Assembly: GCA_965112735.1 (NCBI GenBank)
Contig: OZ218955.1
Span: 3,658,001 to 3,722,000, forward strand
Length of the DNA stretch: 64,000 bases
Source of the DNA: Phaeosaccion multiseriatum
Lineage: Eukaryota > Protista > Ochrophyta, other classes
Direction of reading: 5' to 3'
Position numbers and translations under genes: made by a program. Positions 4,666 to 32,043 of the stretch are shown in pieces; position 1 is the first letter of the stretch, and each line of letters opens with the position of its first letter. Below the pieces are notes generated by a model. The model was not told where the DNA came from. It was given only the letters and a program-made list of their open reading frames with translations, and ran no database searches.

Positions 4666-6176
4666 TGCGTTGGAACTGAAGGAGGGGGAAGTCGTGTTGA
4701 GCGATGCAACTGCTGTTGCTGAGCTTTTGGAGAAGGTAGATGGAGAAAATGAAACGCTGGAGGACATTTTGGAGACACTGCCAGTCAAGGATGGCACGAC
4801 AGGAGGAGAAGATGTTGTGGATCGCCGACAGATGCTGAGGATGCCCAGCGTGGCAAGAGTCTCTGCTCGAGATGTCCTTCGCAACCATCAGCAAAGCAAA
4901 CGTGAAGGCAGGCGAATAACCTCAAGCCTTTACAACCTCGGCATGAAAAGGGGTAAGAGTGCGAAACGGAGTCACGGAGATCTTGTATTCGAGGCAAGGC
5001 AGTGAACTCGAATGCTTACTCGTCCTTCCCCCCCCCCTCCCTCCCCCCCGCTCCCACTCTTTTTAACCAGGTATCCTTGACGAACATGGCATGTACGAGG
5101 GGGACGCGATGAAGTGGGACGACCTCAACTACGTGACCTACCTCGCCCAGGGCGCAATGTGTAAGATTTACACGGCCTTTACGCCCAAGAAACAGAAGGT
5201 GGTGCTCAAGGTGCCGCGGGAGGACGGACCCCCTGAGGCGGTGAATGATCTCCGCGTTGAGGTGCTGATGCTGGCGAAGCTGGACCACGTCAATATCATC
5301 TCATTGGTCGGAGATGGCATGCTGCACAAGCAAGCAGCAACGCCCGGCGCTTCACGTCCCTTTGCGTGCTTTGAATTCCTGGGGGGTGGGACGCTGAATG
5401 ACCGGATATGTGGGTGCGCCGGTCGTAAGATACCGCTCCACGTTGCTCTGTCGCATGCCGGCCAGCTTGCCGATGCTCTGCTCTACCTGCACGAAGAGGC
5501 CCTCCCTGGGCGCGTCATCATTCACCGAGACCTCAAGCCGGACAACATAGGCTTCACGTACGAGGTATGTGGTAGTAGTGCTTCACATGCTGTCTCTCCC
5601 CCCACTCAGCCCCCTCCCTCTTCATGTCACAGTGTCGTAAATACAATGCTCTTCCTCTCTCATGCCTTTCGCTGTTGCCTGCTGCTGTCTCTGTGTGGCT
5701 CTCACTGTCATGTCTTCGTACAGGGGAAGCTGAAACTGTTCGACTTTGGGTTGGCCAAGGTGGTCAAGAGGAAGTACAGGTACTCCAGCGAAGTGTACGT
5801 CATGACCGCGGAGACGGGCAGCCCGCGCTTCATGGCACCTGAAGTAGCGATGGGGGAGGCTTACAACGAGAAGGTTGACGTGTTCAGCTGGTCGCTCATC
5901 TTATGGGCCATTGCCACCAAATCAATGCCCTTCACCCAGCACACTGACTATGAGTCGTTCCTGGAGCACGTGCTTGCGGGAGGCGAGCGCCCCCCCCTTC
6001 CCGACCATTGGCCTGCGGGCCTCCGCGAGCTCTTGACGCGCTCCTGGGACCCCGATGCAGAAAAGAGGCCAGCCATGTCTGCAATTGTTGAAGAGATGGC
6101 GAGCATGTCTGAGGAGGAGCGGGGTATTCACCGAGCCAACAGCGGTGCCTGCTCAGGGGACTGCACTGTCAGCTAA
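4666..6176 (+). CDS. Tyrosine-kinase-like (TKL) protein kinase, spliced; 5' end uncertain
   Basis: Exons about 4666-4952, 5071-5565 and 5724-6176 join in frame at GT-AG sites. Motifs VVLK, HRDLKPDN, DFG, TGSPRFMAPE, DVFSW, RP. The first listed exon starts in phase 2, so an unresolved upstream exon is needed. Confidence 0.8.
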
Positions 6177-7042: not shown

Positions 7043-8583
7043 TCACAGGCACTCGTCGGCATAGCTTCCCTCGATACCTGACTCTGGGCACCTGCGCAGG
7101 CAGCGGCAGACCAGCAGCCCGAGACGAGAGGGAGGGGGGGAATAGACAGCAAATGGCGGTGAGTCCGGTTGAGAGGGATCTAGCTACTATAGACACTCGG
7201 CTGGCCACGGGTCTGCAGCAGCTGGACGTACCAGTAGATAGATGCGGGGGGCTCGCCTGTCCTAGCCAGCTCGAGCGTCGCGCCTTCACAGCTGGTGTGA
7301 CAGCCCCTGCAGTTCTGGCCAAGGCCGAGCATGTTGCTTGGGTGGGCACGAAGACGAGGGAGAACGGAAGATATTGCGTACACATCAACGACAAGAAGGC
7401 GTGTGGGGTGACGAAAGGAGGGTGGCTTCGAGAGACGGCGGGGGAAGGTACCCAAGTGGAGCGAGGAAACGCAAACTCACCAGTGCTGGGGAGCGTCTGG
7501 CTCGGAACAGGACAGATCACAAACGATTTCCTTCGAGAAGGTATCGAGGAAGTCCTGCTGTGAGACGCTCACATCGACGCAGGCGACACAGCTCTCGTCG
7601 TCTTCCGGGAGGGTGTCGAGCTCCACAGGCGCCGGGGTAGGGGCCATGGTCGGGGAGGGTGTCGGAGCTGCGGTGTCACCGTCGACGGGCGAGGGAGTCG
7701 GAGGTGCGGAGGGGGGCGAGGGCGAGGAAGTGGGCGAGGAAGTGGGCGCGGCGGTGGCGTCGGGGCACAGAATGAAGGCAGAGGCGTCCTCGCTGGGGGT
7801 GGAGAACTCCTCGACGTAGGCCTCCAGACCCTCCTAACGGGCAGGGGGGAGCAGGGGGGGGGGGGGGCAGGGTAGAAGGCCGCAGGAAGCGGTGGGCAGC
7901 GAGGTTAGAGTTGTGTTGAATGCAGAATGCAGAACGTCAGCTGAAAGCAGTATGAGCAAGAGGCGTGGAGGGTCATGAGCGAGAATCGCGCTCTGACGTC
8001 TGCGCGCACTCACTTGCGAGAGGAAGCAGCCCCTGCAGGCTTGGTCGAAGCCGCCATAGTTGCAGAGTAGTGCAGAAGGGGGGCTGCAGCCAGCCACGTC
8101 GCAGAAAATGTCCTTGCGGGGGTCGAGGACGAAAGAGGCGTCGGCTAGAGTGTCGCGGCAGTCTTGGTCGGTCTCGCAGGCAAAGGCCAGTCCTGTGCAT
8201 ATCAGCAGCGCGTGGGAGGCGACAGGAAGGGAGAGGGGAGGGCGGCGGTGCGTATGTGAGTGCGGAAGAGGTCCGGCCTGAAGTTCCCGCCAATGCTCGA
8301 GCCGACTCTCCGTAGGCCCCTCGAGCTCACGCGAGCGTCAGCGGCTATGCCACAGAGAGGCCGAGGCATCACTGGCCTCACACAAAAGCCCACACCCGCA
8401 TCTAGAGCAATGAATGCGCGCTAAAGCTGCTTGCTGCCCGGTTCTCTGGCCACGAGAAGAAGAAAGGCAAACCGCCATTCGGCAGGAGGCTGAAACAGCC
8501 AGAAACAGAGTCCTTTCAAGGAGAGACCACTTACCGAGAGCGGCCCAGAGGGCGAAAGCCAATGTGCGAGATGCAGGCGTCAT
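7043..8583 (-). CDS. Secreted Cys-rich protein A: signal peptide, two Cys-rich domains, Thr/Pro linker (about 244 aa)
   Basis: Phase-consistent exons 8583-8535, 8192-8014, 7833-7481, 7336-7232, 7091-7043 give MTPASRTLAFALWAALGLAFA-CETDQDC...KDIFCDVAGCS...CNYGGFDQACRGCFLSQ|EGLEAYVEE...FILCP...KEIVCDLSCS...CNMLGLGQNCRGC. The last exon is the least certain. Confidence 0.75.
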
Positions 8584-8808
8584 GGCAAGTGTCTGTAATG
8601 CGCTGTGTAGAGGATGGATGGGCGTTGGTCGAGTTGTGAGAGAGATTTTGATTGTGTTTTGAGTGTGAAAACCCCCCTCGGGAATGATGCACCCCGGGAG
8701 CGGAGGAGGGGAAGACACAGAGACAAACGAGAAGGAAGAAGAGAGGAGGGGTGGGCGGCACGAGGAGAGAGAGAGGAAACAAGAGGGAAAGAGAGGGATA
8801 GAGAGGGC
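8584..8808. promoter_or_regulatory. Putative bidirectional promoter between head-to-head paralogues A and B
   Basis: Only 225 bp separate the divergent ATGs at 8583 (-) and 8809 (+); the interval is GA-rich. Confidence 0.45.
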
Positions 8809-11800
8809 ATGATGCGCCGTGTGTGCGTTGCGTTTGCAGGGCTAGGTATGTGAATTTGTGAGGGAGAGAGTTGAGCGGAGCATGGGGTCGGCGGGAGTCT
8901 GAGCAAGCAGCCAAAGCACGCCGCAGGCGCTTGCTGGCTCTCTCAGAGTATCTCCTCTCGTGCTGTGCCTCTCATGGTCGCGTGCGCTGTTTGCTAAGTG
9001 TTCTCAGACTTACGGCTGCTCGTGAGTGCAGCTCGTGAGTTCCAACTGCTCATCTCTGTTCCCGCGCCGCACCTTTCCTCTCCTTTCTGCCCCGCAAACA
9101 GCCTCACTGACAGCCGCATGCGAGACGGATCAAGACTGCCTTGCCCTCCTGGCGGATGGGGCTAGTGATGCTGTCTTCGGCTTTCGCAAGACGGTGATAT
9201 GCGACATCCAAGGCTGCAGCCCTTCGCTTGGGGCGGGGGCCGGAGCGCACTGCAATTACGCGGGAGTTGACCAACTCTGCAGGGGCTGCTTCGTCTCACA
9301 GGTGAGCACCCTCCCCTTCCCCTTTGGGGCGGCTTTCTTGGGCTGGGCTTTGGCTTCGTGTCCTTGACTGCAGCGCTTTTTAGCTTATCGATACATGCAT
9401 GCTCCAACTCCGACTGCCCGCAGGCTGATCTGGAGGCCTACGTCGAAGAGAACGACACTTCCCCAGAGGACGCGGGCACATTCATCCTGTGCCCAGACAC
9501 TGCAGATACACCCGCACCCACGGCCCCTGTCACGCCATCCCCCGCTGGGGGAGGAGAAGGGGAGAGACCCTGCTTCGAATCACAAGTGAGTGCCCTCTCC
9601 TCCTCCCCTTTGACGCGCCTTCTACGCATGGGCTGCTGCCTCCTTTCCTTGGCAGCGAGGACGAGAGAGTGTTCATACACGGGGCAGCTTGTGTTTTTTT
9701 TTTTTTTTTTGCATCCACCTTACTGACTAAGCCCGAACCCTGCTCGACGGTTCCCACAGGCTGATCTGGAGGCCTACGTCGAGGAGAACTCCATCCCCCC
9801 CGAGGAGGCGAGCTCCTTCACCGTGTGCTCAGACTCTGCCGACACACCCGCGCCCACGGGGTCTGCCACGCCATCACCTGCTGGAGAAGAAGGGGAGCCT
9901 CCTTGCTTCGAATCGCAGGTGGGTGCCGTCCTCCCCTCTCCCTTGATGCGCTTTCCAGGTCTTGCTTTTGACTTGGCAGCTAAGGCACCAGAATCCCGAT
10001 AAAAGCATTCACTGACCAAGCGCAAACCCTGTGTCCCACTCCCACCCGACCGCCCGCAGACTGATCTGGAGGCCTATGTCGAGGACAACGCCACGCCCCC
10101 CGAGGAGGCGAGCACCTTCACCGTGTGCCCAGACGCTGACGACACACCCGCGCCCACGGTACCCGTGACAGCACCCCCCGCTGGGGGAGAGGGAGAAATC
10201 CCCTGCTTCGAATCACAAGTGAGTGCCTTCCCTCTCCTGAACCTCCCTTCATGCGGCTTCTACGCCTGGGCTGTGACTTCCTTTCCTTGGCAGCGAGGGC
10301 CAAACATTGTCCTCCCCCTTCTCCCCATTGACTTGGTTTCTTGGTCTGCGCTGTGACTGCGTGTACGCGCAAGCGAGGACACCACTAACTAAGCCCGACC
10401 CTGCTCCCGCCCCATAACGCAGGCGGATCTGGAGGCATATATCGAGGAGAACTCCATCCCCCCCGAGGAGGCGAGCTCCTTCACCGTGTGCCCAGACGAT
10501 CCCGTCACACCCGCACCCACAGGGTCTGCCACGCCATCACCTGCCGGAGAAGAAGGAGTTCCTTGCTTCGAATCTCAAGTTAGTGTGCCTCCAGGCCTGG
10601 GCTTTGACTGAGCCTTCCTGGCAGCGAGGGCCAAACCGCATTGGCAGAGGCATACACACAACCCTGAACCCTGTTCTCGAATCCCAACATCGTTCCTTCC
10701 CCTCCCTTTTGACGCGGCATTCTTGGTCTTCGCCTTGACTGCATACCCTTCATACCAACCACACACTGACTAAACCCAAACACTGTATTACACTCCCGCC
10801 CATTGCCGTCCAGGCCGATCTGGAGGCCTACGTCGAGGAGAATACCACGCCCCCCGAGGAGGCGAGCTCCTTCACCGTGTGCCCAGACGCCCCCGATACA
10901 CCTGCACCCACACGGTCAGCCACGCCAGCCCCCGTCGGAGAACAAGGGGAGCCTCCTTGCTTCGAATCACAGGTGGGTGCCTTCTCTCGTCTCCCTTGAT
11001 GCGCTTTCTGGGTCTTGCTTTTGACTTGGCAGCGAAGGCAAGAAACTTTACATATACGCATGCACTGACTAAGCGCGAACCCTGTCTCACCCTCCCACCC
11101 GGCCACCCGCAGGCTGATCTGGAGGCCTACGTCGAGGAGAATGCCACGCCCCCCGAGGAGGCGAGCTCCTTCACCGTGTGCCCAGAAGCCCCCGATACAC
11201 CTGCACCCACAGGGTCTGCCACGCCAGCCCCCGCCGGAGGAGAAGAAGGATTCCCCTGCTTCGAATCGCAAGTGAGTGCCTTCCCTCTGCTTTGACGTGG
11301 TTGGCTTGGCCTGGACTTTGTATGCGTGTAGGTGCAAGCGCAGGCCAGGCACTAATCAGACACTGACCAAGCCCGAATCCGGCTCCACGCTCCCGCCCAT
11401 TGCCGTGCAGGCCGATCTGGAGGCCTACGTCGAGGAGAATACCACGCCCCCCGAGGAGGGGAGCTCCTTCACCGTGTGCCCCGACGCCCCTGATACACCC
11501 GCACCCACAGGATCTGCCACGCCAGCCCCCGCCGGAGAAGAAGGAGAGCCTCCTTGCTTCGAATCACAGGTGGGTGCCTTCCTTTCGTCTCCCTTGATGC
11601 GCTTTCTGGGTCTTGGTTCTGACTTGGCAGCGAAGGCAAGAAAATTTACATATACGCATGCACTGACTAAGCGCGAACCTTGTCTCACCCTCCCACCCGG
11701 CCGCCCGCAGGCTGATCTGGAGGCCTACGTCGAGGAGAATGCCACGCCCCCCGAGGAGGCGAGCTCCTTCACCGTGTGCCCAGACGCCCCCGATACACCT

Positions 11801-14800
11801 ACACCCACAGGGTCTGCCACGCCATCTCCTGCTGGAGGAGAAGAAGAAGGGGTGCCTCCTTGCTTCGAATCCCAGGTGGGTGCCTTCCTCTCGTCTCCCT
11901 TGATGCGCTTTCTGGGTCTTGCTTTTGACTTGGCAGCGAAGGCAAGACAATCTACATATACGCATGCACTGACTAAGTGCGAACCCTGTTCTACACTCTC
12001 GCCCGTTGCCGTGCAGGCTGATCTGGAGGCCTACGTCGAGGAGAATGCCACCCCCCCTGAGGAGGCGAGCTCCTTCACCGTGTGCCCAGACGCCCCCGAC
12101 ACACCCGCACCCACGGGGTCTGCCACGCCATCACCAGCTGGAGGAGAAGAAGGATTCCCCTGCTTCGAATCACAAGTGAGTACCTTCCCTCTGCTTTGGC
12201 GTGGTTGGCATGACCTGGACTTTGTCTGCGTTTACTTTACCAACCACACACTGACTAAGCGCGAACCCTGTCCCACCCTCCCACCCGGCCGCCCGCAGGC
12301 TGATCTGGAGGCCTACGTGGAGGAGAATGCCACGCCCCCCGAGGAGGCGAGCTCCTTCACCGTGTGCCCAGACGCCCCCGATACACCTGCACCCACAGGG
12401 TCTGCCACGCCATCTCCTGCTGGAGAAGAAGAAGAAGGGGTGCCTCCTTGCTTCGAATCCCAGGTGGGTGCCTTCCTCTCGTCTCCATTGATGCGCTTTC
12501 TGGGTCTTGCTTTTGACTTGGCAGCGAAGGCAAGACAATCTACATATACACATACACTGACTAAGCGCGAACCCTGTACTACACTCTCGCCCGTTGCCGT
12601 GCAGGCTGATCTGGAGGCCTACGTCGAGGAGAATGCCACCCCCCCCGAGGAGGCGAGCTCCTTCACCGTGTGCCCAGACGCCCCCGACACACCCGCACCC
12701 ACGGGGTCTGCCACACCACCACCTGCAGGGGAAGAAGAAGAAGAAGAAGGGGAGCCTCCTTGCTTCGAATCACAGATGAGTGCCTTCCCTCTGCTTTGGC
12801 GTGGCTGGCTTCGCCTGGATTCTGTCTGCGTGTACGTGCAAGCGAAGGCCAGACACTAACCACACACTGACTAAGCCCGAACCCGGCTCCACGCTCTCGC
12901 CCATAACCCGCAGACGGACCTGGAGGCCTACATCGAGGAGAATGTCACGCCCCCCGAGGAGGCGAGCTCCTTCACCGTGTGCCCAGACGCCCCCGATACA
13001 CCCGCGCCCACGGGGTCTGCCACGCCATCACCAGCTGGAGAAGAAGAAGGGGGGCCTCCTTGCTTCGAATCCCAGGTGGGTGCCTTCCTCTCGTCTCCCT
13101 TGATGTGCTTCCTATTTCTAGGTATTGGTTTTGACTTGGCAGCGAAGGCAAGACAACCTACATATACACATGCACTGACAAAGCGCGAACCCTGTCCTAC
13201 ACTCTCGCCCATTGCCGTCCAGGCCGATCTGGAGGCCTACGTCGAGGAGAATACCACCCCCCCCGAGGAGGCGAGCTCCTTCACCGTGTGCCCAGACGCC
13301 CCCGATACACCTGCACCCACGGGGTCTGCCACGCCATCACCTGCTGGAGGAGAAGAAGGATTCCCCTGCTTCGAATCACAGGTGAGTACCTTCCCTCTCC
13401 TTTGGCGTGGTTGGTATGACTTGGACTTTGTATGCGTGTACGTGCAAGCGAAGCCCAGATACCAGCCACACACTGACTCAGCGCGAACCCTGTCTCACCC
13501 TCCCACCCGGCCGTCCGCAGGCTGATCTGGAGGCCTACGTCGAGGAGAATGCCACGCCCCCCGAGGAGGCGAGCTCCTTCACCGTGTGCCCAGACGCCCC
13601 CGATACACCTGCACCCACAGGGTCTGCCACGCCATCTCCTGCTGGAGAAGAAGAAGAAGGGGTGCCTCCTTGCTTCGAATCGCAGGTTGGTGCCTTCCTC
13701 TCGTCTCCCTTGATGCGCTTTCTGGGTCTTGCTTTTGACTTGGCAGCGAAGGCAAGACAATCTACATATACACATACACTGACTAAGCGCGAACCCTGTT
13801 CTACACTCTCGCCCGTTGCCGTGCAGGCTGATCTGGAGACATACGTCGAGGAGAATGCCACCCCTCCTGAGGAGGCGAGCTCCTTCACCGTGTGCCCAGA
13901 CGATCCCGTCACACCCGCACCCACGGGGTCTGCCACGCCAGCCCCCGCCGGAGGAGAAGAAGGGGAGCCTCCTTGCTTCGACTCGCAGGTGGGTGCCTTC
14001 CTCTCGTCTCCCTTGATGCGCTTTCCAGGTCTTGGTTCTGACTTGGCAGCGAAGGCAAGACAATCTACATATACACATACACTGACAAAGCGCGAACCCT
14101 GTTCTACACTCTCGCCCATTGCCGTGCAGGCCGATCTGGAGGCATACGTCGAGGAGAATGCCACGCCCCCCGAGGAGGGGAGCTCCTTCACCGTGTGCCC
14201 AGACGCCCCCGACACACCCGCGCCCACGGGGTCTGCCACGCCATCACCAGCTGGAGGAGAAGAAGGATTCCCCTGCTTCGAATCACAGGTGAGTACCTTC
14301 CCTCTCCTTTGGCGTGGTTGGTATGACTTGGACTTTGTATGCGTGTACGTGCAAGCGAAGCCCAGATACCAGCCACACACTGACTCAGCGCGAACCCTGT
14401 CTCACCCTCCCACCCGGCCGTCCGCAGGCTGATCTGGAGGCCTACGTCGAGGAGAATGCCACGCCCCCCGAGGAGGCGAGCTCCTTCACCGTGTGCCCAG
14501 ACGCCCCCGATACACCTGCACCCACAGGGTCTGCCACGCCATCTCCTGCTGGAGAAGAAGAAGAAGGGGTGCCTCCTTGCTTCGAATCGCAGGTTGGTGC
14601 CTTCCTCTCGTCTCCCTTGATGCGCTTTCTGGGTCTTGCTTTTGACTTGGCAGCGAAGGCAAGACAATCTACATATACACATACACTGACTAAGCGCGAA
14701 CCCTGTTCTACACTCTCGCCCGTTGCCGTGCAGGCTGATCTGGAGACATACGTCGAGGAGAATGCCACCCCTCCTGAGGAGGCGAGCTCCTTCACCGTGT

Positions 14801-16496
14801 GCCCAGACGATCCCGTCACACCCGCACCCACGGGGTCTGCCACGCCAGCCCCCGCCGGAGGAGAAGAAGGGGAGCCTCCTTGCTTCGACTCGCAGGTGGG
14901 TGCCTTCCTCTCGTCTCCCTTGATGCGCTTTCCAGGTCTTGGTTCTGACTTGGCAGCGAAGGCAAGACAATCTACATATACACATACACTGACTAAGCGC
15001 GAACCCTGTTCTACACTCCCGCCCATTGCCGTGCAGGCCGATCTGGAGGCATACGTCGAGGAGAATGCCACGCCCCCCGAGGAGGCGAGCTCCTTCACCG
15101 TGTGCCCAGACGCCCCCGACACACCCGCGCCCACGGGGTCTGCCACGCCATCACCAGCTGGAGAAGAAGGGGGGCCTCCTTGCTTCGACTCGCAGGTGGG
15201 TGCCTTCCTCTCGTCTCCCTTGATGTGCTTCCTTTTTCTAGGTATTAGTTTTGACTTGGCGGCGAAGGCAAGAGAACCTACATATACACATGCACTGACT
15301 AAGCGCGAACCCTGTTCTACACTCTCGCCCATTGCCGTGCAGGCTGATCTGGAGGCATACGTCGAGGAGAATGCCACGCCCCCCGAGGAGGCGAGCTCCT
15401 TCACCGTGTGCCCAGACGCCCCCGATACACCCGCACCCACAGGGTCTGCCACGCCAGCCCCCGCCGGAGGAGAAGAAGGATTCCCCTGCTTCGAATCACA
15501 GGTGAGTACCTTCCCTCTGCTTTGGCGTGGTTGGCTTGGCCTGGACTTTGTATGCTTATACGTGCAAGCGAAGGCAAGAGAATCTAGATACACGCATGCA
15601 CTGACTAAGCCCGAACCCTGTCTCACCCTCCCACCCGGCCGCCCGCAGGCTGATCTGGAGGCATACGTCGAGGAGAATGCCACGCCCCCCGAGGAGGCGA
15701 GCTCCTTCACCGTGTGCCCAGACGCCCCCGACACACCCGCACCCACAGGGTCTGCCACGCCAGCCCCCGCCGGAGGAGAAGAAGGAGAGCCTCCTTGCTT
15801 CGAATCCCAGGTGGGTGCCTTCTCTCGTCTCCCTTGACGTGCTTCCTATTTCTAGGTATTGGTTTTGACTTGGCAGCGAAGGCAAGAGAACCTACATATA
15901 CACATGCACTGACTAAGCGCGAACCCTGTTCTACACTCTCGCCCATTGCCGTGCAGGCTGATCTGGAGGCATACGTCGAGGAGAATGCCACGCCCCCCGA
16001 GGAGGCGAGCTCCTTCACCGTGTGCCCAGACGCCCCCGACACACCCGCACCCACGGGGTCTGCCACGCCACCACCTGCAGGGGAAGAAGAAGAAGAAGAA
16101 GAAGGGGAGCCTCCTTGCTTCGAATCACAGGTGGGTGCCTTCCCTCTGCTTTGACGTGGTTGGCTTGGCCTGGATGTTGTCTGCGTGTACGCGCAAGCGA
16201 GGGCCAGGCACTGCCCATACACTGACTAAGCCCGACCCTGCTCCCGCCCCATTGCCGTGCAGGCTGATCTGGAGGCATATATCGAGGAGAACTCCATCCC
16301 CCCCGAGGAGGCGAGCTCCTTCACCGTGTGCCCAGACGATCCCGTCACACCCGCACCCACTCGCTCCTTCCACCCGCCCACTCCCTCTGTCCGACGGACT
16401 CCCCCACCCACTTCTTGGCACTCTCCCTACTCTTCGTCCCCCTCCTCCTCCTCCTCTTCATCCTCATCCTCCTCTTACCAACCGCGCCACGGCTGA
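8809..16496 (+). CDS. Secreted Cys-rich mucin-like protein B with 23 tandem one-repeat-per-exon cassettes (roughly 1300 aa)
   Basis: Exon 1 8809-8845 (MMRRVCVAFAGL) and exon 2 9102-9301 (ASLTAACETDQDC...CRGCFVSQ). Phase-0 repeat exons start at 9424, 9760, 10060, 10423, 10814, 11113, 11411, 11711, 12017, 12299, 12605, 12914, 13223, 13521, 13827, 14130, 14428, 14734, 15037, 15343, 15649, 15957 and 16263. Each is preceded by CAG and a CTGAC/CTAA-type branch-like motif. Stop at 16496. Confidence 0.8.
9424..16361 (+). repeat. Tandem array of about 300-bp exon+intron units (23 copies) with a 907-bp higher-order duplication
   Basis: Each unit encodes ADLEAYVEENATPPEEASSFTVCPDAPDTPAPTGSATPxPAGxEEGxPCFESQ plus an intron. 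13223-14129 is near-identical to 14130-15036; the ORF track shows ORFs repeated at offset 907. Confidence 0.95.
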
Positions 16497-17169
16497 GGAG
16501 GCTATATGATGCTCATGACAGGCTCTTGACGCCATCGGACAAGTAGTGTGTGCTGGTTCCCATTTTTGCTTCAACTGTACATATATGATGAGAGGCTTTT
16601 TTGATCTGAAGGCCCCCAGCTTTACAAGCAAGGGGATAACAGTTCAGATGTAGCGGTATTGGTATTGCATTCTGCATGTGCTCTGTGTGCGCAATCCTAC
16701 TTGCCCTCCGCGCAGGCAGCCCATCGCTTACTCACACTCCTCTGCTGCCGACCAACTTCTATGCTTCCTCTGCCTCCCCTCCGATGGTCTCGCTTCCGTG
16801 AGTCCGACGGACGCTCCTTGACCTTCGTCATGCTGTGGGCGGTACCTTGAGGCCCGCACCTACTCGACGCTGCTGTCGCTGCTGCTGCTGCTGCTGTTGC
16901 TGTCGCTGCTAAAGAGGGATCGCATAGCCTTCGTTACGTTGGAATGTGGAGGAGCTGCGCCGCTTGTAGTGGTTTTTCGTGGGTGGTCGGGCCTCGGTCG
17001 CTGCTGTCTCTGCTGCTTCTGCTGCTGCTGCTGTAGCTGCTATTGAGGGACTGCTCAGCCTTCGTCGTGTTAAAAAGTGGCGGAGCTTGCACAACTTGCG
17101 GCGATATTTCGCTGTTTGTCGAGCCGTTGTCGCTGTTGTTGTTGCTGCTGTTGCTGCTGCTGAGTGGGC

Positions 17170-17873
17170 AGGTTGTAATAGGAGAAGGGCTCCGTGCTAC
17201 TGGTAGGTGTGGGCGTGACTCTTGCTTGCCGGTGGGCCTCGTCGATAGCTTTCCGCGAGTCCAGAAGTGCGGATCATGAGTCCGATCCAATGCTTTGCCT
17301 CTCAACCCCCGGCCGGGAGGCGGCCTCCAGCGCTCAGTGACCACCGTGACAAGGAGCCTCTTACTCTCTCCTTGACTTGGCCTTGGCTCTGGCTTTACTC
17401 GACCTGGCCTGACTTGGTTCGGACTAGACTTGACCTTTGCTCTGGGCCGCTTGCCGCTCTCCCTCCCCGCCAGCGATGACCGGTGCGTGTTCTTCGAGGA
17501 CTGCTGCTCGGACTTCGACGCCCTGTGCGATGATGTCGTTCCCTCCTTGACCCCAGACGGTGAGGATCCGGCACCCACCCCCATACCAGCCGCTTAGACC
17601 CCTGATAGCGCCAGCGAAGCTCCGGGCTGCTCATGGTACATGTGGTGAGAAGCAAGTCAAACGCGCTGGAGGGGCTTAGACGTAGACCTCTCATGTGCAT
17701 GCCTATTTGACATCCTCCTGCGTATGTGTGTGCATGTGTGTGTATGCGTTGTATGTGTGTATGTGTGTGTGTGCATGTGTATGTGCCGCTCTCTCTCTCT
17801 CCGGCCTCCTAGCGCTGAGCCATGCACCGAGCTGGACGACTGCTGCGAGGACTACGACACTCTGTGCATCTGA
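17170..17873 (+). pseudogene. Somatomedin-B-like Cys-rich repeat gene remnant
   Basis: Splicing TG|C at 17202/17474 and 17635/17813 yields CYC-DDRC-VFFEDCCSDFDALC and CSC-AEPC-TELDDCCEDYDTLC, matching the SMB pattern CxCDxxCxxxxDCCxDYxxxC. There is an in-frame TAG at 17595-17597. Confidence 0.55.
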
Positions 17874-18231
17874 ACGTCTTCACATTAGAGATTGGCATAC
17901 ACTACATGATCTACGCACCCAAGTAGGGCACACGGTAGAGCGAACTTGGCAGAAGAAGTCCCTTAGCTACTTCTCTTCGCTCTAGCCGATATATAGACTC
18001 CCACAGGCTTCAGCGCTTTCGCAAACAAGCCAGCGCCGCCACCGCCTTGTCAGTTCTCTTGCCTGAATGATTAGGCGCCGAAAGATCGACCAACAAGGGC
18101 ATTCTACATGCAAAAGCCCACGTCTCTACTGTGTTGGTCGCATAGCACAGGTTTGAATGAAAGAGAAGGGACACCCCCGGGGATTCGCTGACAGGCTGAG
18201 ACTACCAGCTAGTTTGCTTTGTCTTCTCTCA

Positions 18232-20272
18232 ATGCTCTGCCCGGGGCATTCGTCTCGTGAGAGGCTTCTTGGGTGGGGCGCATCGTTGACTGCTCTTGCA
18301 TGGCTCTGTCCTATCTTTATCGGGGGTACCTTCGACACACCGGCCGGTGCCGATTGCGGCTACACGCTCGACTACAGCAAGTCCGTGATCTGGTGAGGCA
18401 GTGGGGAAAGAGCGGGAGAGCTAGAATATCAAGAAGGTAACGATTCCTGTATCTTCTTCTCGATGGCCTCGCTGCAGTGACTCAGAGGGATGCTCTGTCA
18501 GCCGGACTTTGCACGCATTGATGTGTACCTACCCGGCGTCTCCTTTGGGAGGAAACGAAGAGACCGGCACAGCCAAGTGTAAGAGATGCACTCTCGAAGG
18601 CGAGGTGCGTAAACACAGTAGGCAGAGTGAACCACGCTGGCCTTGCGATATGTTATGCCCCGAGCGGAGGGCCATGGAGGGGCTATTAATCGAGCGTTCC
18701 AAGAGCACTAAGCAGCTTAAACAAGCATGCGGTGACGAGGGCTCCTTTCTCTTCCCTTCAGCCTCCCTCGAGGACAATACATCCATCCGCTCATGCGAAG
18801 AAGAGCGACCTCGTACCGTGCACTCCCTGACTCCCTTCCCCCTACTCCCTATCAACCGACCCAAAACGCAGACGATCATTGCCGACTTCATGGCCCAGCA
18901 GAGCCTTGACCCCGAGTGGTCACGAGGGCCTCTCGGTGAGGATGGCGCCGGCTCTTTCCCTTGCTCAGATACAGACATGCCTTGGTCGACCCAAGCCTCG
19001 GACGACAGCGCAGCAGGCGACTCCGTTCACCTGCATCGTCGAGCTCCGCTCCAGCCGCCATCCTCCGGCTCTGATGCTGATGCCGACGCGAGCGGCACAG
19101 TGGCAACTACTTGGTCGGCGGAGGGCGAAAAGGGGGGGGCTGATGAGCCAGCAGCAGCGTATGATGGGCCTTTGACGTGTCCGAAAACCGGCAGTAGCCA
19201 TCCTGGTGATGAGGCCACTCCGACGAAAGCGCGAGGAGCAGGCGAAGAACACCGTCTCCTTCCCTTTCTGTTTCCTCTTCTCCTTCCCCTGTTGGTACAA
19301 GGGCACGCCGGCAATAGCAGCATTGAAGGGAAGAGCCAGGCCGGTGGCAGTGGAGAGAGGAAGAATGCCAGCCGCAGCGCGATGGAGGAGCCGTACAGCA
19401 GGTTTCGCTTCGACGCGGGCAGCGAGGCGCCCCCCGACAAGACTATCGCGACTCGAACTTCGTCCGCGAGTCCCCTCCCGTGGGCCGTGGGGGAGGGGGA
19501 AGTGGTGCTCTGGCCAAGCTCCCGTCCGCGCGACTCTCCCCACCCAAGCGTTGGTTCTTCAGCAGGCAGCAGTTTGACAACTGCGAGACACGTGGGTGGA
19601 CGACCACTGTGGGCGCCAGAGGAGCTCTTCACCAACCACACTCAGCACACGCTGCTGTCCGCTGAGACGACTGAGACCACAGACACGGCTGAGACCACTG
19701 AGACGGCTGAGACCACTGAGACGGCTGAGACCACTGAGACGGCTGAGACCACTGAGACGGCTGACACCACTGAGACGGCTGAGACCACTGAGACGGCTGA
19801 GACCACTGAGACGGCTGAGACCACTGAGACGGCTGAGACCACTGAGACGGCTGAGACCACTGAGACGGCTAAGACCACTGAGACGGCTGAGACCACTGAG
19901 ACGGCTGAGACCACTGAGACGGCTGAGACCACTGAGACGGCTGAGACCACTGAGACGGCTGAGACCACTGAGACGGCTGAGACCACTGAGACGGCTGAGA
20001 CCACTGAGACGGCTGAGACCACTGAGACGGCTGAGACCACTGAGACGGCTGAGACCACTGAGACGGCTGAGACCACTGAGACGGCTGAGACCACTAGGAC
20101 GGCTGAGACCACTGACACGGAGGGCTCGGGGTGGAGCGGCTCGTCGCTTGGGGCCACGGACGGACAATGGGACTCTCTCCGCGTCATAGCGGCGGCGGCG
20201 GGGCTGGCAGGGGTGGTGGCGGTGTGTAGGGCGGCGGCTGGGAGGTGCGGCAGAGTCCCTGCTGACTGTTGA
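18232..20272 (+). CDS. Cys-rich head + (ETTETA)n stalk + C-terminal hydrophobic segment: surface protein C
   Basis: Exons 18232 (or 18157)-18392, 18478-18604 and 18872-20272 join in frame: hydrophobic N-terminus, LDYSKSVICDSEGCS...LMCTY...KCKRCTLEGE|TIIADF...FPC, mucin repeat, then VIAAAAGLAGVVAVC. Confidence 0.65.
19662..20117 (+). repeat. 18-bp coding minisatellite GAGACCACTGAGACGGCT (about 25 units)
   Basis: Directly visible; encodes ETTETA; built from two 9-bp subunits. Confidence 0.95.
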
Positions 20273-22116
20273 GTGATTCCATTTCAGTACACTGCGCGTG
20301 TGGAGGACTTGGGAGGAGTGATTGATTGCTGTGCGTACGTGCTTCCGTATCTACCCTTCCTAAGGCAGCGATTCCTAAAGGGTAGTTGCGTGTTGCTTTA
20401 CATACGTAGTGTTGTCTACTTTGCATACATACAGTGGTGTGCTGCCGAACTACACCCCCATGCACATGCGCGAGGTGGAGCCCTTCACACGCTCCACTCC
20501 GCTCAGTGATTGCCCGGCTGGCAGACAGAGGAAATCCTTATCGGTCTCCCTCCCTACACGCCAACCCCTGCACTTAGCTGAGCTTAGCATAGGGTTAGGT
20601 AGGTAGGCAGCTTAGCTTCGCTAGAAACAGACGCGCACATGGACTCCGCTACCATGTCAAGCTGTGCGCGTCGTCACCTCCACTTCACATCTACCCCGCC
20701 GCTTGTCGGTCTCACTTTCACGCCGCAGCACGAGGGACTCCGAGTCGACACGACGGGATTGCCGAGGGTGCTCTGCCGTTCGCTCACTCCGGCACAGCGT
20801 TACGGAATGACTGAGACGGCCCTCCTCTGGCCCTGGCTGCTGGCCCCGCCCCCACCGCGAATAACGGTTTCGAACCCCGCGCCCGGGCCCCCATCCAGGT
20901 CGTCGCTCGACTCGCCCCACCTGCCGCTGCGGTGCCTTTCCATGATCACGGGACGAAGACGGTCCAAGCTCTCCTTTCCTCCAAGCCCTCCCAACCGCGC
21001 ACGCACCCACACCCGACGCCTCGGGCCCGCAGACGTCAACTCTGTTGTGACTCACAGGGGCCCGCATGTCGACGCCTTGGAGGTTGACCATGCCACCCCA
21101 TTCGCTCGTGCAGCCCTCACTCACGAGCACCACCGGCAGGCAGGCAGGCAGGCAGGAAGCTAAGCTCTCCTCTACCCCCCCGCCCCCTCCTGCTGCTCTC
21201 TCTCTCTGACCATTGACCTGATGCCCAGCGCCTTCTTCCTGACCCTCCTGAGTCCTGTCCCGGCCATGTCCGCAACACTACTCAGCCGCTGCTGCTGCTG
21301 CTCCCTTGCAGCGGGCACAGGAGAAGGGAGAGAAGGGTGGAAGGGAGGGCGGTGCGGTGCTAGGGATAGAGCAATGACACTCAGCACCACGCGCACCATG
21401 TCCAAGACATTGAATGGCCGTCCGTGTGTCCTTTTTCCCCTTCATGGTGAGGAAAAGCGCATGGAAGGAGGGAGGGAGGGAGGGAGGAGGAGGAGGACAC
21501 GATGGCAGTCGAAGGCAGTAAGGCAGCCTACCCGAGGAGTGACACCCGACACCTGACACCTCGCTCCCCCAGGGGTTGTTCCACTTTACAAAAACAAGGC
21601 ACGGGGCTTCAATAGCGGCAAACTTCAATTGACTTGCTCTATGTAACGCCATACATTTTGTGGCTATTCTTGTGCTACTTGCCGCTGACACGAGATGCGT
21701 GTGGTGCGTGTGTACGCTGAGCGCTGAGCACCGAATGAGTGACTGAGTGTGCGTGTGTTCTGCATGTGCGTGTGAGGTAACGGCCAAGGCGTGCTGCGCC
21801 TGCCTGTCCCCCTCCTCTCTCGTGATACACACAAAAAATACCCCACCAAAACTGTTGAGCCCTTTTCCCCCCCCCCCCACTATAAAACTAAAACTTCCCT
21901 CCCCCCTACATACATCTAAATGTACTAACGACAAAAGTTGGCGTGCCAGCGACCGTGAAATGCAGATAGAGACATCACAGCCTTCGTCACTGCCGAGAGA
22001 CGAGAACAACGTCATCGCCCCTCCGCCCCTTCTCCCTCCCTCTCCCTCCCTCCCTCCCTCCCTCCTCCTCCTCCTCCTCCTCCTCCTCCTCCTCCTCCTC
22101 CTCCTCCTCCTCCTCC

Positions 22117-28245: not shown

Positions 28246-31200
28246 CTTTGCCTCTCAACCCCCGGCCGGGAGGCGGCCTCCAGCACTCAGTGACCACCGT
28301 GACAAGGAGCCTCTTACCCTCTCCTTGACTTGACCTTGGCTCTGGCTTTACTCGACCTGGCCTGACTTGGTTCGGACTAGACTTGACCTTTGCTCTGGGC
28401 CGCTTGCCGCTCTCCCTCCCCGCCAGCGATGACCGGTGTGTGTTCTTCGAGGACTGCTGCTCGGACTTCGACGCCCTGTGCGATGATGTCGTTCCCTCCT
28501 TGACCTCAGACGGTGAGGATCCGGCGCCCACCCCCATACCAGCCGCTTAGGCCCCTGATAGCGCCAGCGAAGCTCCGGGCTGCTCTTGGTACATGTGGTG
28601 AGAAGCAAGTCAAACGCGCTGGAGGGGCTTAGACGTAGACCTCTCATGTGCATGCCTATTTGACATCCTCCTGCGTATGTGTGTGCATGTGTGTGTATGC
28701 GTTGTATGTGTGTATGTGTGTGTGTGCATGTGTATGTGCCGCTCTCTCTCTCCGGCCTCCTAGCGCTGAGCCATGCACCGAGCTGGAAGACTGCTGCGAG
28801 GACTACGACACTCTGTGCATCTGAACGTCTTCACATTAGAGATTGACATACACTACATGATCTACGCACCCAAGTAGGGCACACGGTAGAGCGAACTTGG
28901 CAGAAGAAGTCCCTTAGCTACTTCTCTTCGCTCTAGCCGATGTATAGACTCCCACAGGCTTCAGGGCTTTCGCAAACAAGCCAGCGCCGCCACCGCCTCG
29001 TCAGTTCTCTTGCCTGAATGATTAGGCGCCGAAAGATCGACCAACAAGGGCATTCTACATGCAAAAGCCCACGTCTCTACATGTGTTGGTCGCATAATGG
29101 GAGCAGGTTTGAATGAAAGAGAAGGGACACCCCCGGGGATTCGCTGACAGGCTGAGACTACCAGCTAGTTGCGATTTCTCTCAAATGCTCCGCCCGGGGC
29201 ATTCGCCTCGTGAGAGGCTTCTTGGGTGGGGCGCATCGCTGACTGCTCTTGCATGGCTCTGTCCTATCTTTATCGGGGGTACTTTCGACACACCGGCCGG
29301 TGCCGATTGCGGCTACACGCTCGACTACAGCAAGTCCGTGATCTGGTGAGGCAGTGGGGAAAGAGCGGGAGAGCTAGAATATCAAGAAGGTAACGATTCC
29401 TGTATCTTCTTCTCGATGGCCTCGCTGCAGTGACTCAGAGGGATGCTCTGTCAGCCGGACTTTGCACGCATTGATGTGTACCTACCCCGCGTCTCCTTTG
29501 GGAGGAAACGAAGAGACCGGCACAGCCAAGTGTAAGAGATGCACTCTCGAAGACGAGGTGCGTAAACACAGTAGGCAGAGTGAACCATGCTGGCCTTGTG
29601 ATATGTTATGCCCCGAGCGGAGGGCCATGGAGGGGCTATTAATCGAGCGTTCCAAGAGCACTAAGCAGCTTAAACAAGCATGCGGTGACGAGGGCTCCTT
29701 TCTCTTCCCTTCAGCCTCCCTCGAGGTCAATACATCTATCCGCTCATGCGAAGAAGAGCGACCTCGCACCGTGCACTCCCTGACTCCCTTCCCCCTACTC
29801 CCTATCAACCGACCCAAAACGCAGACGATCATTGCCGACTTCATGGCCCAGCAGAGCCTTGACCCCGAGTGGTCAGGAGGGCCTCTCGGTGAGGATGGCG
29901 CCGGCTCTTTCCCTTGCTCAGATATGGACATGCCTTGGTCGACGCAAGCCTCGGACGACAGCGCAGCAGGCGACTCCGTTCACCTGCATCGTCGGGCTCC
30001 GCTCCAGCCGCCATCCTCCGGCTCTGATGCTGATACCGACGTGAGCGGCACAGTGGCAACTACTTGGTCGGCGGAGGGCGAAGAGGGGGGGGCTGATGAG
30101 CCAGCAGCAGCGTATGATGGGCCTTTGACGTGTCCAAACCGGCAGTAGCCATCCTGGTGATGAGGCCACTCCGACGAAAGTGCGAGGAGCAGGCGAAGAA
30201 CACCGTCTCCTTCCCTTTCTGTTTCCTCTTCTCCTTCCCCTGTTGGTACAAGGGCACGCCGGCAATAGCAGCACTGAAGGGAAGAGCCAGGCCGGTGGCA
30301 GTGGAGAGAGGAAGAATGCCAGCCGCAGCGCGATGGAGGAGCCGTACAGCAGGTTTCGCTTCGACGCGGGCAGCGAGGCGCCCCCCGACAAGACTTATCG
30401 CGACTCGAACTTCGTCCGCGAGTCCCCTCCCGTGGGCCGTGGGGGAGGGGGAAGTGGTGCTCTGGCCAAGCTCCCGTCCGCGCGACTCTCCCCACCCAAG
30501 CGTTGGTTCTTCAGCAGGCAGCAGTTTGACAACTGCGAGACACGTGGGTGGACGACCACTGTGGGCGCCAGAGGAGCTCTTCACCAACCACACTCAGCAC
30601 ACGCTGCTGTCCGCTGAGACGACTGAGACCACAGACACGGCTGAGACCACTGAGACGGCTGAGACCACTGAGACGGCTGAGACCACTGAGACGGCTGAGA
30701 CCACTGAGACGGCTGAGACCACTGAGACGGCTGAGACCACTGAGACGGCTGAGACCACTGAGACGGCTGAGACCACTGAGACGGCTGAGACCACTAAGAC
30801 GGCTGAGACCACTGAGACGGCTGAGACCACTGAGACGGCTGAGACCACTGAGACGGCTGAGACCACTGAGACGGCTGAGACCACTGAGACGGCTGAGACC
30901 ACTGAGACGGCTGAGACCACTGAGACGGCTGAGACCACTGAGACGGCTGAGACCACTGAGACGGCTGAGACCACTGAGACGGCTGAGACCACTGAGACGG
31001 CTGAGACCACTGACACGGAGGGTTCGGGGTGGAGCGGCTCGTCGCTTGGGGCCACGGACGGACAATGGGACTCTCTCCGCGTCATAGCGGCGGCGGCGGG
31101 GCTGGCAGGGGTGGTGGCGGTGTGTAGGGCGGCGGCTGGGAGGTGCGGCAGAGCCCCTGTTGACTGTTGAGTGATTCCATTTCAGTACACTGCGCGTGTG

Positions 31201-32043
31201 GAGGAACTTGGGAGGAGTGATTGATTGCTGTGCGTACGTGCTTCCGTATCTACCCTTCCTAAGGCAGCGATTCCTAAAGGGTAGTTGCGTGTTGCCTACT
31301 CGCTTTACATACGTAGTGTTGTCTACTTTGCATACATACAGTAGTGTGCTGCCGAACTACACCCCCATGCACATGCGCGAGGTGGAGCCCTTCACACGCT
31401 CCACTCCGCTCAGTGATTGCCCGGCTGGCAGACAGAGGAAATCCTTATCGGTCTCCCTCCCTACACGCCAACCCCTGCACTTAGCTGAGCTTAGCATAGG
31501 GTTAGGTAAGTAGGCAGCTTAGCTTCGCTAGAAACAGACGCGCACATGGACTCCGCTACCATGTCAAGCTGTGCGCGTCGTCACCTCCACTTCACATCTA
31601 CCCCGCTGCTTGTCGGTCTCACTTTCACGCCGCAGCACGAGGGACTCCGAGTCGACACGACGGGATTGCCGAGGGTGCTCTGCCGTTCGCTCACTCCGGC
31701 ACAGCGTTACGGAATGACTGAGACGGCCCTCCTCTGGCCCTGGCTGCTGGCCCCGCCCCCACCGCGAATAACGGATTCGAACCCTCGCCTGGGCCCACAT
31801 CCAGGTCGTCGCTCGACTCGCCCCACCTGCCGCTGCGGTGCCTTTTCATGATCACGGGACGAAGACGGTCCAAGCTCTCCTTTCCTCCGAGCCCTCCCAA
31901 CCGCACACGCGCCCACACCCGACACCTCGGGCCCGCAGACGTCAACTCTGTGGTGACTCACAGGGGCCCGCAAGTCGACGCCTTGGAGGTTGACCATGCC
32001 ACCCCATTCGCTCGTGCAGCCCTCACTCACGAGCACCACCGGC
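28246..32043 (+). repeat. Segmental duplication block X, copy 2
   Basis: Direct near-identical copy of 17290-21135. Confidence 0.95.
29185..31170 (+). pseudogene. Frameshifted copy of surface protein C
   Basis: Relative to copy 1 there is a 2-nt deletion near 30135 (ccaaacc vs ccgaaaacc) and a 1-nt insertion near 30395 (gacttatc vs gactatc). The ETTETA array is 3 units shorter. Confidence 0.7.

Follow-up and report, generated by a model that had tools for sequence, protein, structure and literature searches.

The locus and its genes

The stretch of DNA considered here, called the window throughout, comprises 64,000 nucleotides (nt) of the ochrophyte Phaeosaccion multiseriatum (G000:C6:3658001-3722000; contig OZ218955.1 of assembly GCA_965112735.1), from a genome of 67 Mb in 22 contigs. 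Three neighbouring genes, here named A, B and C, lie between positions 7,043 and 20,272 of the window (Table 1). Genes A and B each encode a cysteine-rich domain, the head, which belongs to a genome-wide family of probably extracellular proteins and is carried on stalks of two different constructions, and gene C resembles them in the motifs of its head. The window has a G+C content of about 60% and its introns are of the GT-AG type.

A profile of the head, 62 positions long and built from 19 copies in this genome, was applied to the six frames of the window, where it found only the copies A1 and A2 of gene A and the copy of gene B; searches were run on single exons or on single-exon paralogues. 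Invariant in the profile are a Lys, four Cys including those of a Cys-Arg-x-Cys core, and a Gly, and the core has the spacing C-x8-C-x2-C. The original prediction for this locus, made from the letters of the DNA, had proposed four heads of one shared domain, and all four of the strings that it quoted are in the sequence. Heads A1, B and A2, the last of these divided between two exons, were recovered at the expectation values (E) listed in Table 1, but the head of gene C was not.

Table 1. Features of the head-gene locus, with positions in the window
Feature	Position	Strand	Remarks
Gene A exon 1, ATG and 16 codons of a putative signal peptide	8535..8583	-	phase-1 GTAAGT donor at its end
Gene A exon 2, N-type head A1, seven Cys	8014..8192	-	profile E 1e-24
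Gene A exon 3, end of A1 (its C-terminal extension, up to Cys-Pro-Asp), then TPSP linker and first two thirds of A2	7481..7833	-	profile positions 6-44, E 4.8e-6
Gene A exon 4, remaining third of A2, with tail and stop	7180..7336	-	profile positions 47-62, E 1e-5
Gene B head exon, N-type, seven Cys	9102..9301	+	profile E 1e-25; phase-1 acceptor, phase-0 donor
Gene B, 23 tandem exon cassettes	9424..16496	+	all phase 0; exons 156-174 nt, introns mostly 123-147 nt
Two somatomedin-B-like half modules, possibly 3' exons of gene B	17474-17559, 17813-17872	+	same pair downstream of the head gene at L008
Gene C	18157..20272	+	exon 1 18157-18392; open frame of 587 codons after a proposed intron of 85 nt
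3.8-kb direct duplicate of 17293-21137, 98% identical	28246..32043	+	second copy of the somatomedin-B-like exons and of gene C

Gene A

A single minus-strand gene encodes both heads, A1 and A2, as separate domains, in the order predicted signal peptide, head A1, TPSP linker and head A2. The signal peptide was judged from hydrophobic core, exon phase and cleavage context. Exon 1 of gene A is the sole ATG-to-donor candidate that combines a hydrophobic core with the phase required by the head exon, its phase-1 donor matching the phase-1 acceptor of exon 2, and the two exons once spliced place a predicted Ala-Phe-Ala cleavage context immediately 5' of the first Cys. Exon 2 is bounded by the acceptor cag at 8193-8195 and by the donor gtgagt from 8013. 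To be read as one domain, A2 requires a GT-AG intron at 7337-7480 (144 nt, phase 2) that divides a Cys codon, which the first base of exon 4 completes, and each flanking exon covers a part of the profile that the other leaves out. Comparison with the paralogues L006, L009 and L015, in which an A2-type domain has no intron, supports this splice.

A near-identical copy of gene A (L002; G000:C6:3639992-3643165) is found in the opposite orientation, 16.5 kb ahead of the window. It retains all four exons of the gene, the signal exon included, and its linker is 180 nt longer than that of gene A, the difference being three extra repeats of 20 residues. Identity between the two copies is 94-99%, in introns as well as in exons, which makes the comparison uninformative on selection. 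Just upstream of the 3' end of gene A, an open frame resembling a protein kinase occupies positions 5091-6176 of the plus strand.

Extent of the domain and its cysteines

The head as delimited in the original prediction proved too short, since the domain runs on into the following exon. A phase-0 GT donor stands directly after the CxxC motif and four further codons in A1, in B and in all eight of the paralogous N-type heads that were examined, which bears out the shared intron that had been proposed for A1 and B, although not for C. The exon that follows each N-type head opens with a Glu-x-Leu-x-x-Tyr ... Cys-Pro element, succeeded by a Pro/Thr linker, and in single-exon members of the family (the subfamily on contig C3, P0010, P0016, P0018, P0026, P0060 and P0002) the same element stands directly after Cys-Arg-Gly-Cys. 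Read across these sequences, the domain is predicted to cross the conserved phase-0 intron and to continue up to a Cys-Pro that lies some 25 residues inside the following exon. The whole domain is taken to be a disulfide-rich unit of about 85-100 residues. The head exon contributes seven Cys and the extension an eighth, and therefore one of the predicted disulfides must span the intron.

Across the family, cysteines have disappeared two at a time, namely the first along with the third and the eighth along with the tenth. Where the Ile-Cys-Asp motif has no Cys, an N-terminal Cys is missing too, and a Gln at the eighth position goes together with the absence of the tenth Cys. Such paired losses fit disulfide bonds, and the partners they suggest are putative.

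Gene B and its cassettes

Each of the 23 cassettes of gene B consists of the C-terminal extension of the head and a Pro/Thr linker, closed by Pro-Cys-Phe-Glu-Ser-Gln, which repeats the final residues of the head exon. The reading of the first part follows from the extent of the domain: since the domain reaches into the next exon, each cassette of what had been regarded as a stalk holds a piece of the head. The start of exon 3 of gene A resembles a cassette of gene B (E 3e-5), and the link between extension and cassettes, which draws on this resemblance and on an alignment of motifs, remains in part a matter of interpretation. All cassettes except the last (22 of 23) end in Cys-x-x-Ser-Gln followed by a donor, the last reaching a stop at 16496, and an N-x-T sequon occurs in 20 of them. 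Judged from their sequences, the cassettes are neutral both in frame and in cysteine parity, such that exon skipping could vary the length of the stalk.

Four cassettes have unusual donors, namely ATGAGT in cassette 11 (position 12776 of the window), GTTAGT in cassette 4 (10579) and GTTGGT in cassettes 14 and 17 (13686 and 14593); skipping or read-through may occur at these cassettes. At about 16380-16546 of the plus strand, in the frame of the open reading frame 16328-16546, a Leu-rich stretch of 23 residues resembling a membrane helix leads into a basic tail and then a stop. It is an other-frame reading of the CTC-rich end of the last cassette, and may represent either a chance product of low complexity or an anchor reached through an unseen splice.

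The somatomedin-B-like half modules downstream of the cassettes score 19.3 and 21.9 bits against the second half of PF01033, over profile positions 20-38 only and with a cutoff of 23.1 bits. The module has only three copies in the genome, the third of them at L008 (about 2455-2570), some 770 nt beyond an N-type head; a phase-2 donor there would yield a complete split signature of eight Cys. The half modules in the window may be true 3' exons of gene B.

Gene C and its duplicate

The case of gene C is different. Its proposed intron (18393-18477, phase 2) divides a Cys codon, and its long open frame carries an ETTETA array at 19662-20120 (25.5 copies of an 18-bp unit) and a hydrophobic tail at about 20183-20224. 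Against the head profile, exon by exon, it scores 2.0 bits in exon 2 and -0.6 bits in exon 1; none of the at least 115 genome-wide profile matches falls on it, and neither another paralogue in the genome, nor an outside homologue, nor a bridging sequence was found. An intron after its CxxC is not required, because the frame is open for 587 codons. On the other side, its strings Lys-Ser-Val-Ile-Cys-Asp-x-x-Gly-Cys-Ser and Ala-Leu-Met-Cys-Thr-Tyr are close to the family consensus, and a loose pattern of the family invariants, written after gene C had been seen, matches only B, A1, C and the copy of C in the window and occurs in none of 200 shuffled windows. Whether gene C is a true but divergent homologue is an evenly balanced question; it is not a demonstrable member of the family, the resemblance of its head motifs being possible evidence of kinship. 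The three stalks first described are all present in the sequence, as a TPSP linker, 23 cassettes and an ETTETA array with a hydrophobic tail, but with C unplaced they amount to two stalks of the family instead of three.

Gene C has a second copy in the direct duplicate 11 kb away, where the long frame is interrupted by a deletion of 2 bp and an insertion of 1 bp, and the signal-like core has changed as well. The two copies differ by 15 substitutions, distributed 4/4/7 over the codon positions, which is too few to show constraint.

Distribution and architectures of the family

The original prediction regarded the genes as a hidden local cluster, a view overtaken by the genome-wide count. At E <= 0.01 the head profile finds at least 115 matches, a lower bound, on many contigs and with tandem arrays on contigs C2, C3 and C12. 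Outside this genome, an exhaustive profile search among 1.84 billion protein cluster representatives gave only 70 matches at E <= 0.001. The named sources are Ectocarpus species, Pylaiella, Ascophyllum and Phaeothamnion, in each case as an "unnamed protein product", and further matches come from MMETSP, Tara, a dinoflagellate transcriptome and uncultured material; the best are proteins of Ectocarpus and Phaeothamnion. The domain is specific to the brown algae and the related golden-brown algae (ochrophytes). Word-index protein searches with the C-type head of L015, with the A1 head in its open frame and with the non-repeat part of gene C returned no match.

True homologues of the head, matching at E 2.5e-57 to 1e-8, include CAM9211322.1 (Ectocarpus sp. 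12), CAB1118868.1 (Ectocarpus CCAP 1310/34), CAN0326318.1 (Pylaiella) and CAM9829305.1 (Phaeothamnion). Like the proteins described here, the unnamed brown-algal homologues have a predicted signal peptide and heads spaced by Pro/Thr-rich linkers, and one Ectocarpus protein of 1356 residues contains six heads with such linkers between them. They differ in lacking the cassette array and in the end of the domain, which reads Cys-Gly-x-Cys-x-x-Cys-x-Pro-Cys-Pro in the brown-algal copies in place of the Leu-x-x-Tyr ... Cys-Pro extension found here, and they have neither a name nor a described function.

Several architectures occur in this genome. Besides the head-linker-head arrangement of gene A, contig C3 bears tandem genes for secreted proteins of 160-200 residues made only of two related Cys-rich modules, and in L019 a signal peptide and a head are followed by poly-Ser. 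A signal-like peptide stands directly before the domain in L018 and L019 and, among the homologues from elsewhere, in P0004, P0018, P0026, P0032 and P0043. In the homologues P0033 and P0065, a short variant of the domain is followed by a hydrophobic helix and then by a protein kinase, an order from which the short variant is predicted to be extracellular. A further protein, L015 (G000:C16:1902502-1905606), has in one open frame three repeats of a different Cys-rich unit and then a C-type head; its repeat unit ends in the same Asn-Cys-Arg-Ala-Cys core and connects the long and short variants in one protein.

Named families and fold

The domain was taken from the outset to be without a name, and the searches agree. 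Nothing in Pfam came near the gathering cutoff for the domains of the window, for 19 paralogues or for 10 homologues, the sole genuine matches being the kinase domains located elsewhere in P0033 and P0065. No match was found by a profile search of the sequences of solved structures, and literature searches yielded no description of the domain.

The structure prediction that had been proposed as a check gave a confident model once a complete domain was supplied. The head exon folded alone was poor (predicted local distance difference test, pLDDT, 60.7) and was excluded from the fold search, and a complete single-exon paralogue folded with an alignment of 58 sequences reached a pLDDT of 86.8 and a predicted template modelling score (pTM) of 0.76. 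Its elements follow the order helix-strand-helix-strand-helix. Foldseek searches against the PDB and BFVD returned only noise, and the ESM Atlas gave no usable match; a structural scan of 48,161 chains with VIA-align found nothing at Z >= 2 which, by the caveat of that tool, is no proof of a new fold.

Proposed function and alternatives

The reading preferred here, and held with moderate confidence, is that genes A and B encode secreted glycoproteins in which an ochrophyte disulfide-rich domain, serving as an extracellular binding module, is presented on stalks rich in Pro, Thr and Ser. The proteins are probably extracellular because gene A has a signal exon, because paralogues and homologues have signal peptides, and because of the Pro/Thr linkers, the N-x-T sequons and the kinase-bearing homologues. 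The domain would bind a polymer of the wall or matrix, or another surface protein, and chains with several heads (two in A, six in the Ectocarpus protein) could cross-link or tether the matrix. The stalk, probably O-glycosylated, would set the reach of the heads. In gene A this would take the form of two heads on a linker of variable length, and in gene B of a single head after which its last loop recurs 22 more times, strung out like beads with linkers between them. The kinase-bearing relatives hint at a further use of this module in sensing. The original description of diversified surface proteins is upheld as to stalks that vary in kind and length and as to a probable extracellular location, while a part in adhesion or recognition is something that we infer.

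Several observations weigh against this interpretation. No transcript-derived protein appeared in the word-index searches, and every splice junction is accordingly a prediction. Upstream of the head exon of gene B there is a phase-1 GTGAGT donor after base 9021, in a frame that has no ATG, and a search for an ATG-bearing signal exon of that gene produced no convincing candidate. Its 3' end is uncertain as well, lying either at the stop at 16496 or beyond a further splice. The cassettes reach no significance against a profile made of the C-terminal extension alone. The fold, moreover, gives no functional hint, and the ligand, the glycans and the location are deduced from the features listed above.

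An alternative is that the head is primarily a module of sensing or recognition (of self and non-self, of gametes or of microbes), an algal counterpart of the ectodomains of plant cysteine-rich receptor kinases, with the soluble and stalked forms acting as decoys or co-receptors. The short variant placed outside the membrane in two kinase-bearing proteins speaks for it, as do the large, tandemly expanded family with its arrays on three contigs, the difference in stalk length between recent duplicates, and a core spacing the same as that of DUF26. Yet neither A nor B has a kinase or a clear membrane anchor, no match to DUF26 proteins exists in sequence or fold, and the comparison of gene A with its duplicate, similar in identity in exons and introns, is uninformative on diversifying selection; recognition as the primary role is considered unlikely. 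It is distinctly less probable that the small proteins of the family are secreted peptides of a defence or toxin-like (defensin-like) kind from which the stalked A and B proteins were derived as carriers of the same module. The two-module genes on C3 recall such peptides, tandem arrays of small disulfide-rich secreted proteins being typical of defence, but multi-head proteins with long linkers, kinase-bearing proteins and conservation in brown algae better fit a structural or binding role, and no similarity to a known toxin or antimicrobial family was found. That the cysteines bind metal, as in a zinc-ribbon-like CxxC module, and form no disulfide-bonded surface protein at all, is very improbable: an invariant CxxC with a second Cys pair in the core and weak matches to zinc-finger models are what might be expected of it, but those matches are far below threshold, cysteines are lost in pairs, and signal peptides, Pro/Thr linkers, sequons and the extracellular place of the domain in the kinase-bearing homologues all point elsewhere.

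Secreted, stalked binding proteins remain the preferred reading for genes A and B. A bolder proposal would make the head a new fold and a general extracellular ligand-binding module of ochrophytes, at work in matrix cross-linkers, in small secreted proteins and, through the short variant, in receptor kinases, with gene B varying the length of its stalk by skipping among 23 cassettes; as a whole it is speculative and seems improbable.

Significance and comparison with known systems

The proteins of the surfaces of brown-algal and related cells are little known. Here, an abundant domain, with at least 115 matches in 67 Mb, up to six copies per protein and a presence in the genetic model Ectocarpus, is without a name, a fold match or an assigned function. 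Naming it would annotate many "unnamed protein product" entries and, together with the finding of its ligand, would give access to the assembly of the matrix, to adhesion or to surface sensing among major marine primary producers. A disulfide-bonded domain divided by a conserved intron, with its last loop amplified to 23 cassettes, also offers a clear case of exon duplication in the building of repeat proteins.

Among named domains, the plant DUF26/Gnk2 domain (PF01657) of cysteine-rich receptor-like kinases shares the C-x8-C-x2-C core spacing and, as is predicted for the head, is extracellular and found both in secreted proteins and in kinase-bearing ones. No match to PF01657 was obtained even at E 10, however, nor any to the solved DUF26 structures, nor a fold match at Z >= 2, and the resemblance is confined to motif and domain architecture. 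Chimeric arabinogalactan proteins (AGPs) are reported to be expressed in brown algae (PMC11468063). As in A and B, glycoproteins of the AGP-like or hydroxyproline-rich kind in brown and green algae have linkers rich in Ala, Pro, Thr and Ser joined to globular domains. The head is not known to be among the domains described for chimeric AGP-like proteins.

In its general plan the arrangement recalls Wsc1 of yeast, which has a Cys-rich head on an O-glycosylated stalk rich in Ser and Thr (PMC9024836), and the mucins, which combine repeat arrays with Cys domains (PMC11344006). Common to these would be a compact, disulfide-bonded head held off the cell by an extended, glycosylated stalk. No homology to either was found, and gene A lacks a membrane anchor. 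The stalk of gene B is furthermore of another construction, in that it is assembled from separate exon cassettes, each with a predicted disulfide loop, and is no plain single-exon Ser/Thr repeat.

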